DNA of 64,000 nt from NCBI GenBank assembly GCA_002269645.1, contig NIVC01001575.1, forward strand, positions 224,691 to 288,690, given 5' to 3'. Of this stretch, positions 6,001 through 9,000 are shown one piece after another. The translations under genes were made by a program, and so were the position numbers. This DNA is from Macrostomum lignano. Its lineage: Eukaryota. Below the pieces are notes generated by a model that saw nothing but the letters and a program-made list of their open reading frames with translations, made no database searches and was not told the origin of the DNA. Position 1 is the first letter of the stretch. Each line of letters begins with the position of its first letter.

Positions 6001-9000
6001 CCTTATTTGTCATCAAATTGAATTGAATAGCAGGCATATCTAGTTCAGCCCGTAAACTTCCAATAGTAATTAATTTCTAAATATTAACGAAGATTTGTCG
6101 GTTAGTCATACTGTCATACTATATTTAAAATATGCCTTCTTCGCCGCTATCCAAGTCTGCTGCCAATAATAGAAAATCGTTACCAGCCGATTCAGCATCG
6201 GATTTGTCAACGTCATCACGGTCATCCTCATTATTGCCAGCTTCTGCTAAGCGAAATCGGCCAAGTCGACTGCAATTAGGCTTTGTTGGACTTGGAGGAT
6301 TAGGAGTAGATTTAGGCTCAAATAATAATAGTACTATTTGTGCTACTAACACTAGTAGTAGTATTAGTCCGCTCAGTCCGATATCGCCAAATTGTGCGCC
6401 TGTTATTGCTAGGCCTAGAAAGTTGCGATCAATTGGTGAGTTAATATTAGATTTCAAGTTTGTTTTTAATGTTACAGACGCGTAGGGCCTAGCCCTAAAA
6501 TTCGTGTCTTGACACTTGACTTTTTTCTGGTCTTAGTCATAGCTTAGCTAAGTAAGTGTAGATGACGAGGCCTTGTGTGTTTAATTAAAGAACTGCTTAC
6601 TCTTGCCGTTTAGCTAGGTAGATAAACCCTCGTAGAAATCCTGGTAGCGTAAAGCTTCTGGATTATTATTATTAGCTTAGCTGTTCATAATTGCTTTAAG
6701 TGTAATTAAGTTGTTTTTTGGTTATAAATAGCACAAGCCATAAGATTGCAGTTTTGCCACTTGTGTTATCGATAAACTCGTTATCAGTTAAAATGGGGAA
6801 GGTCATTATAAAAGCTAACCTGACTAATAATGTCAAAGTTGAAATTTACCTAGCTGTCTCTTCGTCTGTTGTATTTATTAGTCTCGTGATCTGAGAAGTT
6901 AAAATTAAATAAAACAGGAACAGATAAATAATCAAATTGTAGTTCTAAAGAGTTAATTAACAATGGCATAGGCATAATTGTTTAATGTTTATTAAAAAAT
7001 TACACTTGACTGTATTGTATTATTTGTCTCAAGTTGGTTTATAGTCAGTCGGAAAAACTAAAATAGTCCCACCCGATCCAAGTCATTCAAGTGCGCAGTG
7101 ATACTAAGTTATCTAGAATTGTATGGGACGAAAAGAAAATAACAATGAGATAAGTTGTGTTGAATGCGTCAAAAAGATGGCAGAGGGTCGTAGGAGGCAG
7201 GCCCTCTCGCTACTGAAGAAACACTACACTGCAGATACTACGCCTGCCTTCTGCTTGCTATCATCATGGATTTTTTTGGAATCGCTCTCTCTCTCTCTCT
7301 CTCTCTCTGGCTCTCTGAGAGCCATCTTTATCTTTCTCTTTCTTTTATTCTGGTTTCCTTTGGACTTTTCCTGTCAACTCCTAAACTGGTTTGATGATTT
7401 ACGACAGAATAAAAAAATAACATCAGCTCAGTTGATAACGTCTAATGAATTAAAACTGGATTAAAGCCAAAAGACTTTCTAACATTGCTAGCAAGATGTT
7501 AAACCTGAATTACAATAACAATTACATTTCTTCTCTATTTCCTTGTTTCTCATCAGTCAATAGAAAATTACGTTTCCTAAATCCCAATACCAACGGCAAA
7601 CCGAAGCACGGAACTGAAACAATCCCAACTATTTTTGCTGACTCAACTCCGACAGTGTCAGCCGCCCCCTTTTCCGTTTCGTTGTTCTGTGATTCTGACC
7701 TATTCTAAGTTCTTTCGGGAAATTTTGTGTACAGTAAATAGTTAATACTGAGTGACCCGCTTTCACATAGACCGTTCTGTAATCCGTCCCCTCTCTATGC
7801 CCTATCCATTGCACTTGAAATTTGGCGCGTGTTGGAAAACCCCCAGTTTTTTCTCGGTCTTACTTTTTTGCGATACTGAAAAATTAGAGTTTTCGCGACT
7901 GCTGACTGACTAGGCCAGCTAGAAAAGGGGAGTTTATTTGACGTTGCCCCTACCTACGTGAAGCCTCTCTAACCAATCCTATTTTTAGCATATTGACTAT
8001 GTCCTGTGACAAAACCAAAGCACAGTTAACGGCCTTGGTTTGTGGGATTCTCCACCACCCAGTTAGAAGTGTGCAGTTGCGCCGATTCGTTCCATTCAAG
8101 TCCGCTTTTCTAAGCTTAGCTAGCTATTTTACTGGAATAGTCTGGAAACCTGCTGTGACTCATTGGGCGTGTGGCAGAACTGGATAGGAAGGGCAGAGGG
8201 GAGAGGCCGACCGGCAGAACTGGATAGATAAGGGGTAAGGGGTGTGTGCGCTTGTGGACTTGGAATTATCGCGCTGCATGCGCCTTGCGAGTGAGTGGAA
8301 GCTTTGGGGGGAGGGGAGAGAAAGCGTTCCCTCTCTGCCCTTCAACCCTGTATTTCTTTCCAATCAGGCGCAGTGTGCATTTGATCGTGTTTCTAAAAAT
8401 AACCCAGTGTCAGTGAAGAGTCATGATCTATTTTTAGCTTAATTCTTTACCTAAACCTTTCCTATAAAGTCTTCCCTCTAAGCTCAAGCAAATTGCTATA
8501 AAACCACTGCACATAACTTTTTGTCCGCTTATGCTTCTGCTAATACCCTTAATTTTTTGAGATCTTCTTAGTTAACAATTCTCAGCAGTATTTCAAAAGT
8601 CATGGTTCTGTGCAGAAAATTCCGACCAGAGAGACTGACATTTCATCATCTCAGCTGTCTGAATGCGGCAGGCGCACCAGCAGCTGCTTCTGCAGCCGCT
8701 GCGGTCACCTGCGCGCAGGAAGCCCGCATGGCCGAGGAGGCCAGCTCGCAGCTAAACCGGCATCAACCAATTATTTCAGGCGGTTTCGCCAATTTCGCCG
8801 CGGCTTATCCGCAGTATTGCGAATCAAAGTGCCCAGCAGCGGCGGCTGCAGTCGACACTGTTGATGGAGGTTGCTGTCAACACGCTGGACGGTATCTGGT
8901 TGAGCCAAGCTACACTAGCCAGGGACCTACTCAGCTACTTAGCTTCGTCTACGTCGGCTCCCAGTCCGACGCCTGCGACGCCGATGTAATGCGTCGTCAC

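Follow-up and report, generated by a model that had tools for sequence, protein, structure and literature searches.

MAP-kinase phosphatases are commonly assumed to select their substrates through the rhodanese domain. Puckered, a JNK phosphatase that is described as an orthologue of DUSP10, is induced by AP-1 and closes a negative feedback loop, and to our knowledge it carries no rhodanese domain. JIP1-class JNK docking motifs follow the pattern [RK]-P-x-x-L-x-[LIVMF], which is the ELM regular expression for this class. Motifs of this kind are reported to be JNK-selective (Zeke et al. 2015, PMC4670726), and the critical residues of the JIP1 motif (RPKRPTTLNL) are R160, P161, L164 and L166 (PMC4670726). 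In human DUSP10/MKP5, a JIP1-type motif at residues 18-24 is reported to bind JNK, and the rhodanese domain to bind p38 (PMC4670726). The F-site of JNK1 is contacted by the FNFL sequence of the MKP7 catalytic domain, an interaction for which the rhodanese domain is not needed (PMC4802042). Finally, the short isoform X2 of chicken DUSP8, which has no rhodanese domain, is produced from an intronic alternative promoter (PMC12536144); isoforms of this kind are considered to have no docking site. An intronic promoter in chicken DUSP8 and a JIP1-type motif in MKP5 are therefore already known, and the exon described below is a variation on both.

The window, by which we mean the whole stretch of 64,000 nucleotides analysed here, is part of contig NIVC01001575.1 of the flatworm Macrostomum lignano and contains a MAP-kinase phosphatase gene of the DUSP8/DUSP16/VHP-1 type. 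Outside Macrostomum, nearly all named matches are DUSP8, DUSP16 or vhp-1, with 40-60% identity over the catalytic part. Orthology with Puckered or DUSP10 was considered and rejected on the basis of the same best matches, none of which points to DUSP10. The enzyme belongs to the JNK/p38-selective phosphatase subgroup and is predicted to dephosphorylate these two kinases. Positions 6132-6435, which lie in a large intron of this gene, are probably the protein-coding segment of a true alternative first exon. The parts of the gene that frame this exon are as follows.

68..178, + strand: rhodanese exon A, with a 12-residue basic kinase-interaction motif (about 143-178); donor GTGAGC, phase 0
3519..3741, + strand: rhodanese exon B (…VVLYDEG…STVRLLQ); donor GTGGGC, phase 1
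8602..8779, + strand: 8602 leader, continuous with the catalytic exon; 14-residue start, RPERLTF at 8623-8643
8770..8779, + strand: shared acceptor attatttcag/GC, which is coding (I-I-S-G) in the 8602 form
8780..9142, + strand: common exon C, with the last rhodanese helix (17 residues) and the start of the catalytic domain
9290..9413, + strand: common exon D, with the active site HCLAGISRS at 9325-9351
9509..10106, + strand: common exon E, with FNFL at 9546-9557, a Ser/Ala-rich tail and the stop codon

Exon A and its splice to exon B are present in two UniRef models (P0124 and P0260). Between the two genomic copies of the locus, exon A differs at 1 of 111 bases, versus 21 of 589 in its flanks, and exon B differs at 1 of 223; both exons are under constraint. 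The intron between exons B and C (3742-8779) spans 5,038 bp. A join of the rhodanese exons to exon C is absent from all gene models and contigs examined, and the canonical rhodanese form of this locus is proposed from the phase of that join and the continuity of the domain. When reconstructed in this way, the putative form scores 27.6 bits against the Pfam Rhodanese model, versus a cut-off of 22.2. The phosphatase model and the two rhodanese models, A0A1I8HDA5 and A0A1I8J7L6, probably describe parts of one gene.

The only annotated product of the locus starts at ATG 8602, within the same 5-kb intron, and this is also where the models P0001 and P0121 begin. L002, a spliced RNA contig of a related species, runs collinear with the window from 8600 onwards. 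The residues specified by its opening 16 codons are those of the window, and its first 77 nt yield no alignment to the window. The 8602 form therefore exists as mRNA in a related species. The corresponding leaders of the paralogues begin MVLCRKNRPCGLKF, and the alternative exon yields no alignment with the 8602 leader. Because the 8602 leader lies inside the intron, the locus has three 5ʹ alternatives rather than two. The initial annotation had suggested that there may be two forms, a rhodanese form and one lacking this domain; the exon behind the latter is well supported by a transcriptome-derived protein of the paralogue described below, but the count has to be raised by the 8602 leader.

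The alternative first exon itself has the following anatomy.

6126..6128, + strand: in-frame TAA that closes the frame 5ʹ of the ATG, two codons before ATG 6132-6134
6132..6435, + strand: coding sequence of the alternative first exon (101 codons and the single base G6435)
6249..6278, + strand: 10-residue docking peptide, whose core RPSRLQL (6258-6278) matches the JIP1-class JNK pattern
6366..6386, + strand: SPLSPIS, with two S-P sites, one as P-x-S-P; identical in the paralogue
6436..6441, + strand: splice donor GTGAGT, phase 1; GTAAGC in the same phase in the paralogue

Open codons reach 6434. The acceptor at 8779/8780 takes one base from the upstream exon, and since the donors of exon B and of the alternative exon are both in phase 1, both joins are in frame (...VRLLQ/GGFANF from exon B and ...LRSIG/GFANF from the alternative exon). 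The ATG, the upstream stop, the 101 codons and the donor phase suited to 8780 had all been read exactly in the initial annotation, and the peptide at 6249-6278 and the several Ser-Pro sites (residues 4-5, 79-80, 82-83 and 85-86 of the exon peptide) are present as it described them. Two other ways of using the exon were considered. The exon is unlikely to serve as an internal cassette placed between exons B and C, because its frame is closed at the 5ʹ end by the TAA at 6126 and any insertion there would disrupt the C-terminus of the rhodanese domain. An in-frame splice to a point just 5ʹ of ATG 8602 was rejected, because both AGs that follow the stop at 8569 are out of phase.

The length of the open reading frame alone is unremarkable, because many frames of at least 100 amino acids occur in the first 14 kb. 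The intron was resampled 3,000 times with its dinucleotides preserved, and 49 of the resulting sequences contained an ATG frame that runs for 60 codons or more and ends in phase 1 at a GTRAGT donor. A frame of at least 100 codons with the same ending arose once (1/3,000), and none (0/3,000) also carried [RK]P..L.[LIVMF]. Frame, donor and motif in combination therefore exceed what chance produces.

A homologous exon exists in a diverged paralogue. There, an ATG-initiated exon (KRARPGRLQLEF…SPLSPISAN…ARKRRK) is located about 2.85 kb 5ʹ of the paralogue's own catalytic exon:

L003, 6944-7160: paralogue exon, ATG-initiated, ending in phase 1 at donor GTAAGC

The protein PAA48339.1 (P0123) reads …ARKRRKG/SGLHEF, which is this exon, the first coding exon of the product, joined to the homologous acceptor cctttcag/GC. 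It is the product BOX15_Mlig033715g1, an alternative-exon isoform of the paralogous gene Mlig009817. The GenBank annotation that includes it was built from RNA-seq assemblies and TransDecoder, with some alternative transcripts filtered out before submission. PAA48339.1 was deposited as a hypothetical protein without description, and the window exon is unannotated.

The exon peptides of the two paralogues match with a BLASTP E value of 9e-6. Their Smith-Waterman score of 73 compares with 29.4 +/- 5.2 for shuffled sequences, and 0 of 5,000 shuffles reach it. Both exons encode KR.RP.RLQL.F (KRARPGRLQL in the paralogue, versus the core RPSRLQL in the window), SPLSPIS.N and a basic end, and both pair a phase-1 donor with a TTTCAG/GC acceptor that, in the paralogue, lies within the MVLCRK exon. 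They differ in length (72 codons in the paralogue versus 101 in the window), their identity of about 40% is confined to the last 58-65 residues, and the GGFANF…YP..CE helix that follows the join in the window has degenerated to GSGLHEF in the paralogue. BLASTN of window positions 1-8601 against the paralogous loci gives no match at E <= 1e-3, so the similarity of the exons exists only at the protein level. In the two shared motif blocks, 22 core codons show 16 synonymous differences over 18 synonymous sites and 9 non-synonymous differences over 48 sites. Synonymous sites are thus saturated while residues are kept, which indicates protein-level selection.

Searches for the exon product elsewhere gave only negative results. 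The exon peptide with 17 residues of exon C has no match at E <= 10 among 5.8 billion proteins, a profile of both paralogous exons has no match in the same collection and reveals no orthologue in another species, and the full alternative product as query retrieves no protein that spans the leader. No protein of this collection, which was searched through representatives of 90%-identity clusters, therefore contains the exon, either by itself or spliced to the catalytic exons; P0123 surfaced only in a cluster listing. In the annotation, both copies of the gene carry only the 8602 form and do not include the alternative exon. Because this annotation was filtered for alternative transcripts, the absence of the exon there is weak evidence.

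In the candidate docking motif, RPSRLQL is preceded by K-R-N, and the R-P-x-x-L-x-L spacing after basic residues resembles that of JIP1. JIP1 is a scaffold rather than a phosphatase, and docking by the window leader is predicted. JIP1-pattern cores occur in four leaders (RPSRLQL, RPERLTF, RPGRLQL and RPCGLKF), such that the R-P-x-x-L-x-[LF] spacing appears in two unrelated leaders of each of two paralogues. Among 120 DUSP8/16-like proteins, the pattern precedes the catalytic domain in the five from Macrostomum and in one other (P0081, KPSWLNV); the match in P0003 falls past its catalytic site. MKP5 is a close precedent, as a JNK/p38-selective phosphatase whose disordered N-terminal region contains a JIP1-class linear motif. 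However, MKP5 is of the DUSP10 type and carries both docking modules in one protein, whereas the window gene is of the DUSP8/16 type and its modules are predicted to be mutually exclusive through alternative first exons.

It is unlikely that the exon is real but its KR.RP.RLQL block is something other than a JNK dock, such as a nuclear-localisation signal, a p38/ERK dock or a binding site for a different partner. The block is basic, as is a second conserved patch (ARPRKLR in the window, ARKRRK in the paralogue), and a motif this short matches by chance at about 4e-4 per residue; JNK docking itself is a prediction. The exact spacing is nevertheless kept in all four leaders, the JIP1-class spacing is the one reported to be JNK-selective, and the enzyme is of the JNK/p38-selective subgroup and retains FNFL, whose residues are invariant across the protein alignment.

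A second alternative, to which we assign a low probability, holds that the exon is a relic, functional in an ancestor and in the paralogue but silent here, so that the locus makes the 8602 form only. This reading would fit the annotation of both copies and the failure to find the exon in database proteins, although the filtering described above blunts the first of these points. The sequence of the exon itself argues otherwise: its ATG, frame, consensus donor and three peptide modules are all intact, and between the genomic copies it differs at 1 of 304 bases with no indel, whereas the flanking non-coding segments carry indels and 1.5-9% differing columns. Across the coding exons already known, 7 of 1,263 bases differ, and the paralogue exon shows one variable site in 217 bases versus about 4% substitutions in its intron. 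The two copies are only about 2-4% diverged, too alike for a strong test of constraint, and the probability of so few differences in the exon is about 0.02-0.06 at the lowest local intron rate. The candidate promoter block described below is also identical between the copies over 5871-5980.

Far less probable is that the exon is transcribed with its intron retained, either as a read-through peptide of 117 residues (6132-6485) or as a long 5ʹ leader of the 8602 form. In the orthologue of the paralogue, 8602-type RNA contigs indeed have a 5ʹ untranslated region that follows the genome without a break for 228 nt or more. But the annotated coding sequence of the paralogue joins the exon to the internal acceptor, and the phase of the donor is kept in both paralogues. 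The TTTCAG/GC acceptor is likewise kept in L002, L003 and L005 and is spliced in PAA48339.1; with its fixed TCA serine codon, it is retained in four sequences. A chance reading frame in intronic low-complexity DNA can be dismissed as extremely improbable: long frames abound here, the complementary strand is likewise open over the exon (6125-6457) and the peptide is rich in Ser and Asn, but the resampling results, the significant homology to a transcript-supported exon and the pattern of substitutions all stand against it.

If 6132-6435 is an active first exon, as we favour, the 5-kb intron would contain an internal promoter, with transcripts that probably start within a G+C-rich block 5ʹ of the exon or immediately 3ʹ of that block.

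5829..5980, + strand: G+C-rich block, candidate promoter, 5ʹ of the alternative exon
5832-5841, + strand: GGGATTCCCC, in the G+C-rich block
5908-5917, + strand: CTGAGTCAGC, with an AP-1/TRE-like core, in the G+C-rich block
5944-5953, + strand: GCCCTCCCCC, in the G+C-rich block

All three 10-mers also occur 5ʹ of the paralogue's exon, in a G+C-rich block there, versus 0.33 common 10-mers expected from shuffled sequences. GGGATTCCCC occurs once per locus, each time 5ʹ of the alternative exon, and the AP-1-like sequence TGAGTCAG lies 5ʹ of the exon in both paralogues. Two of the shared motifs appear in opposite order in the two loci. Since TGAGTCA and TGACTCA occur often in these loci, AP-1 sites carry no weight by themselves. 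The G+C-rich block (about 5830-5980) is a candidate promoter on indirect signs, namely its composition and the three shared 10-mers.

From this putative start, the donor at 6436 would be joined to the acceptor at 8779/8780, so that the rhodanese exons and the 8602 leader are all skipped. A phosphatase of 462 residues would result, in which the last helix is all that remains of the rhodanese domain, and in which DSPc is the sole Pfam domain (135 bits, residues 158-288). Residues 1-102 have pLDDT values below 50, no secondary structure and no Pfam domain, a sign of disorder that is weak because the alignment has no depth in this part. The expected leader of about 100 disordered residues would present the JIP1-class motif, SPLSPIS about 35 residues further on, and the basic patch ARPRKLR. 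Most likely, the leader would occupy the docking groove of JNK while FNFL engages the JNK F-site, a two-point recruitment that would dispense with the p38-docking rhodanese domain. The leader is probably also a substrate of JNK.

Comparison with vertebrates shows a similar design with a different leader. The leader of vertebrate DUSP8 X2 joins just before GGF (MPLDV…MRLKIRVRRMKEGRELR/GGFAAF), at the same intron position as the window exon. It lacks RP..L.L, however, and has no similarity to the window exon (E = 3.1). The isoform is regarded by its authors as devoid of a kinase-interaction motif, whereas the predicted window form has another docking motif in its place.

The initial annotation was also reminded of Puckered. 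Its structural reading of an alternative exon is well supported by the splice in the paralogue and by the kept motif blocks; its two-form count and the comparison with Puckered need amending. The comparison is an analogy only, given best matches to DUSP8, DUSP16 and vhp-1 and the description of puc as a DUSP10 orthologue. The likeness consists of the AP-1-like TGAGTCAG 5ʹ of the exon, and AP-1 control here is a motif match. Even so, it is possible, though we propose it only tentatively, that Macrostomum DUSP8/16 genes are three-promoter units in which one catalytic core receives swappable docking modules and an AP-1-responsive intronic promoter closes a Puckered-like loop. If so, the modules would comprise the rhodanese domain and two unrelated leaders, each with a JIP1-class JNK motif, and JNK would induce a phosphatase form that docks on JNK and is phosphorylated by it at SPLSPIS. 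Such a feedback loop would have evolved separately in the DUSP8/16 lineage, and two old paralogues would have retained it.

More generally, the locus suggests that promoter choice can act as a docking switch, exchanging a folded p38-type domain for a linear JNK-type motif. One gene would show this exchange twice, and its paralogue would repeat it. The locus offers a natural test of how a D-site and an F-site contribute to phosphatase specificity, in an animal for which transgenesis and regeneration assays exist and in which JNK signalling is relevant to regeneration. The annotation of Mlig006006 gains a missing exon and an isoform.

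The gene examined here encodes a MAP-kinase phosphatase; among named proteins, DUSP8, DUSP16 and nematode vhp-1 stand closest to it. The exons of the gene, as read from the sequence, are the following.

68-178, + strand: exon A, rhodanese, holding the basic 12-residue motif
3519-3741, + strand: exon B, rhodanese, with a phase 1 donor
8780-9142, + strand: exon C, the first common exon
9290-9413, + strand: exon D, with the active site HCLAGISRS
9509-10106, + strand: exon E, with FNFL and the stop codon

The boundary between exons B and C sits immediately ahead of GGFANF, a conserved stretch that closes the rhodanese domain. 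At this same point the ‘X2’ proteins of vertebrate DUSP8 switch sequence, and the intron position is therefore old.

Within this intron, the initial annotation had described an alternative first exon (6132-6435), and its observations on the sequence are confirmed. The ATG at 6132, the in-frame TAA at 6126, the 101 open codons plus G6435 and the GTGAGT at 6436 are all exact, the exon end fits the acceptor 8779|8780 to yield …LRSIG|GFANF…, and the ten-residue docking-motif block (core RPSRLQL) lies at 6249-6278. ORFs as long as this exon are common in the region, so its length alone is weak evidence. The 5,038-bp intron was resampled 3,000 times with its dinucleotides preserved. ATG frames of 60 codons or more that ran into a phase 1 GTRAGT donor arose in 49 resamplings, one of 100 codons or more in a single case, and such a frame also holding the motif in none. 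The combination of frame, donor phase and motif is rare by chance. The exon is unannotated in the window and, alone or joined, was found in no protein of the collection by homology and profile searches. We consider it very probably genuine.

A counterpart exists in the paralogue Mlig009817 (~40% identity over the first common exon), which was retrieved with 10 kb of flank (locus L003). An ATG-initiated frame at L003:6944-7160, ~2.85 kb upstream of the MVLCRK exon, encodes MRSQQPGEDENRTVAAAPAAQIAPVAKRARPGRLQLEFSVQLPAAADSAGLGSPLSPISANPSILGARKRRK and is followed by GTAAGC in phase 1. The 357-residue protein PAA48339.1 (BOX15_Mlig033715g1, P0123) opens with this exon, followed by …ARKRRKG|SGLHEF…, a junction that splices the exon to cctttcag|GC, which is homologous to the acceptor 8779|8780. 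Because the M. lignano annotation was built from StringTie/TACO RNA-seq assemblies, mapped de novo transcripts and TransDecoder (PMC5730564), this isoform is transcript-based. GenBank already lists it, as a hypothetical protein with no description. Homology searches missed P0123 and a cluster listing revealed it, which illustrates how representatives of 90%-identity clusters can conceal alternative isoforms.

The two exon peptides are similar (BLASTP E = 9e-6; Smith-Waterman score 73 versus 29.4 +/- 5.2 for shuffles, with 0 of 5,000 shuffles as high) and have in common the blocks KR.RP.RLQL.F and SPLSPIS.N and a basic end. No DNA similarity was found between the window and paralogue introns. 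Over the 22 codons of the shared blocks there are 16 differences at 18 synonymous sites versus 9 at 48 non-synonymous sites. It is the peptide, rather than the DNA, that has been kept since an old duplication.

Comparison of the two genomic copies of the window locus weakly favours constraint on the exon. One of its 304 bases differs (P90L), with 32 of 431 differing columns just upstream, 7 of 465 just downstream, 55 of 600 further on and 7 of 1,263 across exons known to be coding. The exon value has P ~0.02 at the substitution-only intron rate of ~2% and P ~0.06 at the lowest local rate. Three copies of the paralogue exon show one variable site in 217 bases, and its intron carries ~4% substitutions. 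The acceptor TTTCAG|GC, with its serine written as TCA throughout, is kept in the window, in L002, an RNA contig of a related species, in the paralogue locus L003 and in L005, which agrees with a double role as coding sequence and splice site.

The sole annotated product of the locus, PAA66250.1 (P0001), starts at an ATG at 8602, within what had been supposed to be pure intron, and reads uninterrupted across 8779|8780 into exon C. Its copy on the second contig (P0121) is the same. L002, a 1,261-nt Logan RNA contig (run SRR28338165), runs parallel to the window from 8600 onwards, lacks the two downstream introns, which are excised exactly at 9142|9290 and 9413|9509, and encodes the same residues as the window in its first 16 codons. 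A real mRNA of the 8602 form therefore exists. The leader of this form (8602-8779), conserved in the related species and the paralogues, carries RPERLTF, and the paralogues begin MVLCRKNRPCGLKF; both match the JIP1 pattern R-P-x-x-L-x-[LF]. The proposal that this locus makes two phosphatases, with and without rhodanese domain, is partly supported and needs amending from two 5ʹ forms to three 5ʹ alternatives.

The remaining alternative is the rhodanese form. UniRef models P0124 and, on the second copy, P0260 join exon A to exon B, and P0260 has an extra upstream exon (…GALLISPDSLVKLLALNPTK) beyond the window. These models and their paralogue counterparts, P0164 and P0261, all end …VRLLQ, and between copies the conservation of exons A and B equals that of the coding exons. 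A join of exon B to exon C occurs in none of the gene models; we infer this canonical form because the phases fit, the domain would be continuous and the intron position is conserved. As reconstructed, it exceeds the Pfam Rhodanese threshold, and the alternative form yields DSPc only. In the paralogue, the rhodanese end (GGF..F…YP..CE) has decayed to GSGLHEFHSL (L003 10182-10220; P0004-P0006), while the rhodanese exons persist (P0164, P0261).

The docking-motif block fits the JIP1 class, whose critical residues in JIP1 itself are R160, P161, L164 and L166; JNK is reported to accept the JIP1 and NFAT4 classes only, and in human MKP5 a JIP1-type motif (residues 18-24) binds JNK and the rhodanese domain binds p38 (PMC4670726). 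MKP7 (DUSP16) contacts JNK1 via FNFL of its catalytic domain, and the rhodanese domain, which is not needed for JNK, docks p38 (PMC4802042). Since FNFL is present in the window gene, a rhodanese-less form would be expected to retain JNK as substrate and no longer to dock p38 with high affinity. A second JNK contact, on the docking groove, would come from the leader. Docking-dependent MAPK substrates typically carry their phospho-sites downstream of the docking motif. SPLSPIS lies ~35 residues past the motif here, and so the leader is probably phosphorylated by the kinase that it would recruit. No structure is predicted for the leader, over which the alignment has no depth. Overall, that the motif docks JNK is a modestly favoured reading.

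In a set of 120 DUSP8/16-like proteins, the five from Macrostomum and P0081 (KPSWLNV) are those that carry the pattern N-terminal to the catalytic domain; the match in P0003 falls past the catalytic site. The alternative-exon and 8602 leaders could not be aligned with each other, and the motif was therefore gained or kept twice.

In chicken, CRISPR activation revealed an intronic promoter that yields rhodanese-less DUSP8 (PMC12536144). Vertebrate DUSP8 ‘isoform X2’ proteins (among P0047-P0120) have a conserved 39-residue leader, MPLDVVIAP…MRLKIRVRRMKEGRELR, joined just ahead of GGF. This leader joins at the same place as the alternative-exon leader, but is unrelated in sequence and lacks a JIP1-type motif. 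Some rhodanese-less nematode vhp-1-like proteins have basic leaders (…RARRPKQRIQL, …KTRRPRGRVQV) that resemble docking motifs with one more spacer residue. MKP5 already provides a known case of a MAP-kinase phosphatase with a JIP1-type motif. What is new is the combination, in which alternative first exons would replace a docking domain that is folded by a linear motif of JNK type, and in which each of two old paralogues has two leaders of this kind.

A G+C-rich block, a candidate promoter, lies upstream of the alternative exon in both paralogues. The blocks share three 10-mers (0.33 expected from shuffles; maximum 4 in 200 shuffles): GGGATTCCCC (near-palindromic), CTGAGTCAGC (AP-1-like) and GCCCTCCCCC, at 5832-5841, 5908-5917 and 5944-5953 in the window and at 6619, 6591 and 6779 in L003. 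Every retrieved locus that spans the region has a single GGGATTCCCC, always upstream of the alternative exon, and 5871-5980 is identical in both copies of the window locus. TGAGTCAG contains the AP-1 consensus core. Drosophila puc forms a JNK-induced feedback loop, and an AP-1 core would agree with such feedback here, as a lead only; AP-1-type sites are common across these loci, and motif order differs between window and paralogue.

The introns are rich in tandem repeats, whose copy number varies between the two genomic copies. These and other features are as follows.

directly upstream of the window (L001 ~330-1330): tandem repeat, ~21-bp unit
3280-3450: tandem repeat (CTGT)n
3769-4392: tandem repeat, ~43-bp unit
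4857-5360: tandem repeat, 15/30-bp unit, the source of a spurious 135-aa ‘NLGDV’ ORF
12058-14212, - strand: overlapping ORFs, ~2 kb beyond the gene on its downstream side, in which …LGYADDLALLS… is a reverse-transcriptase motif of YADD type
16500-17450: long short-tandem-repeat array, with self-matches shifted by ~15 bp in the second-copy comparison
21578-22747, - strand: 389-aa ATG ORF, C2 domain (Pfam E = 4e-12)
39816-40583, + strand: exon-sized ORF, class II alanyl-tRNA synthetase core (Pfam tRNA-synt_2c, E = 3e-107)
53057-55597, + strand: 846-aa ATG ORF, no Pfam match

Pfam gave no match on 12058-13023; the overlapping ORFs at 12058-14212 are probably a decayed non-LTR retroelement.
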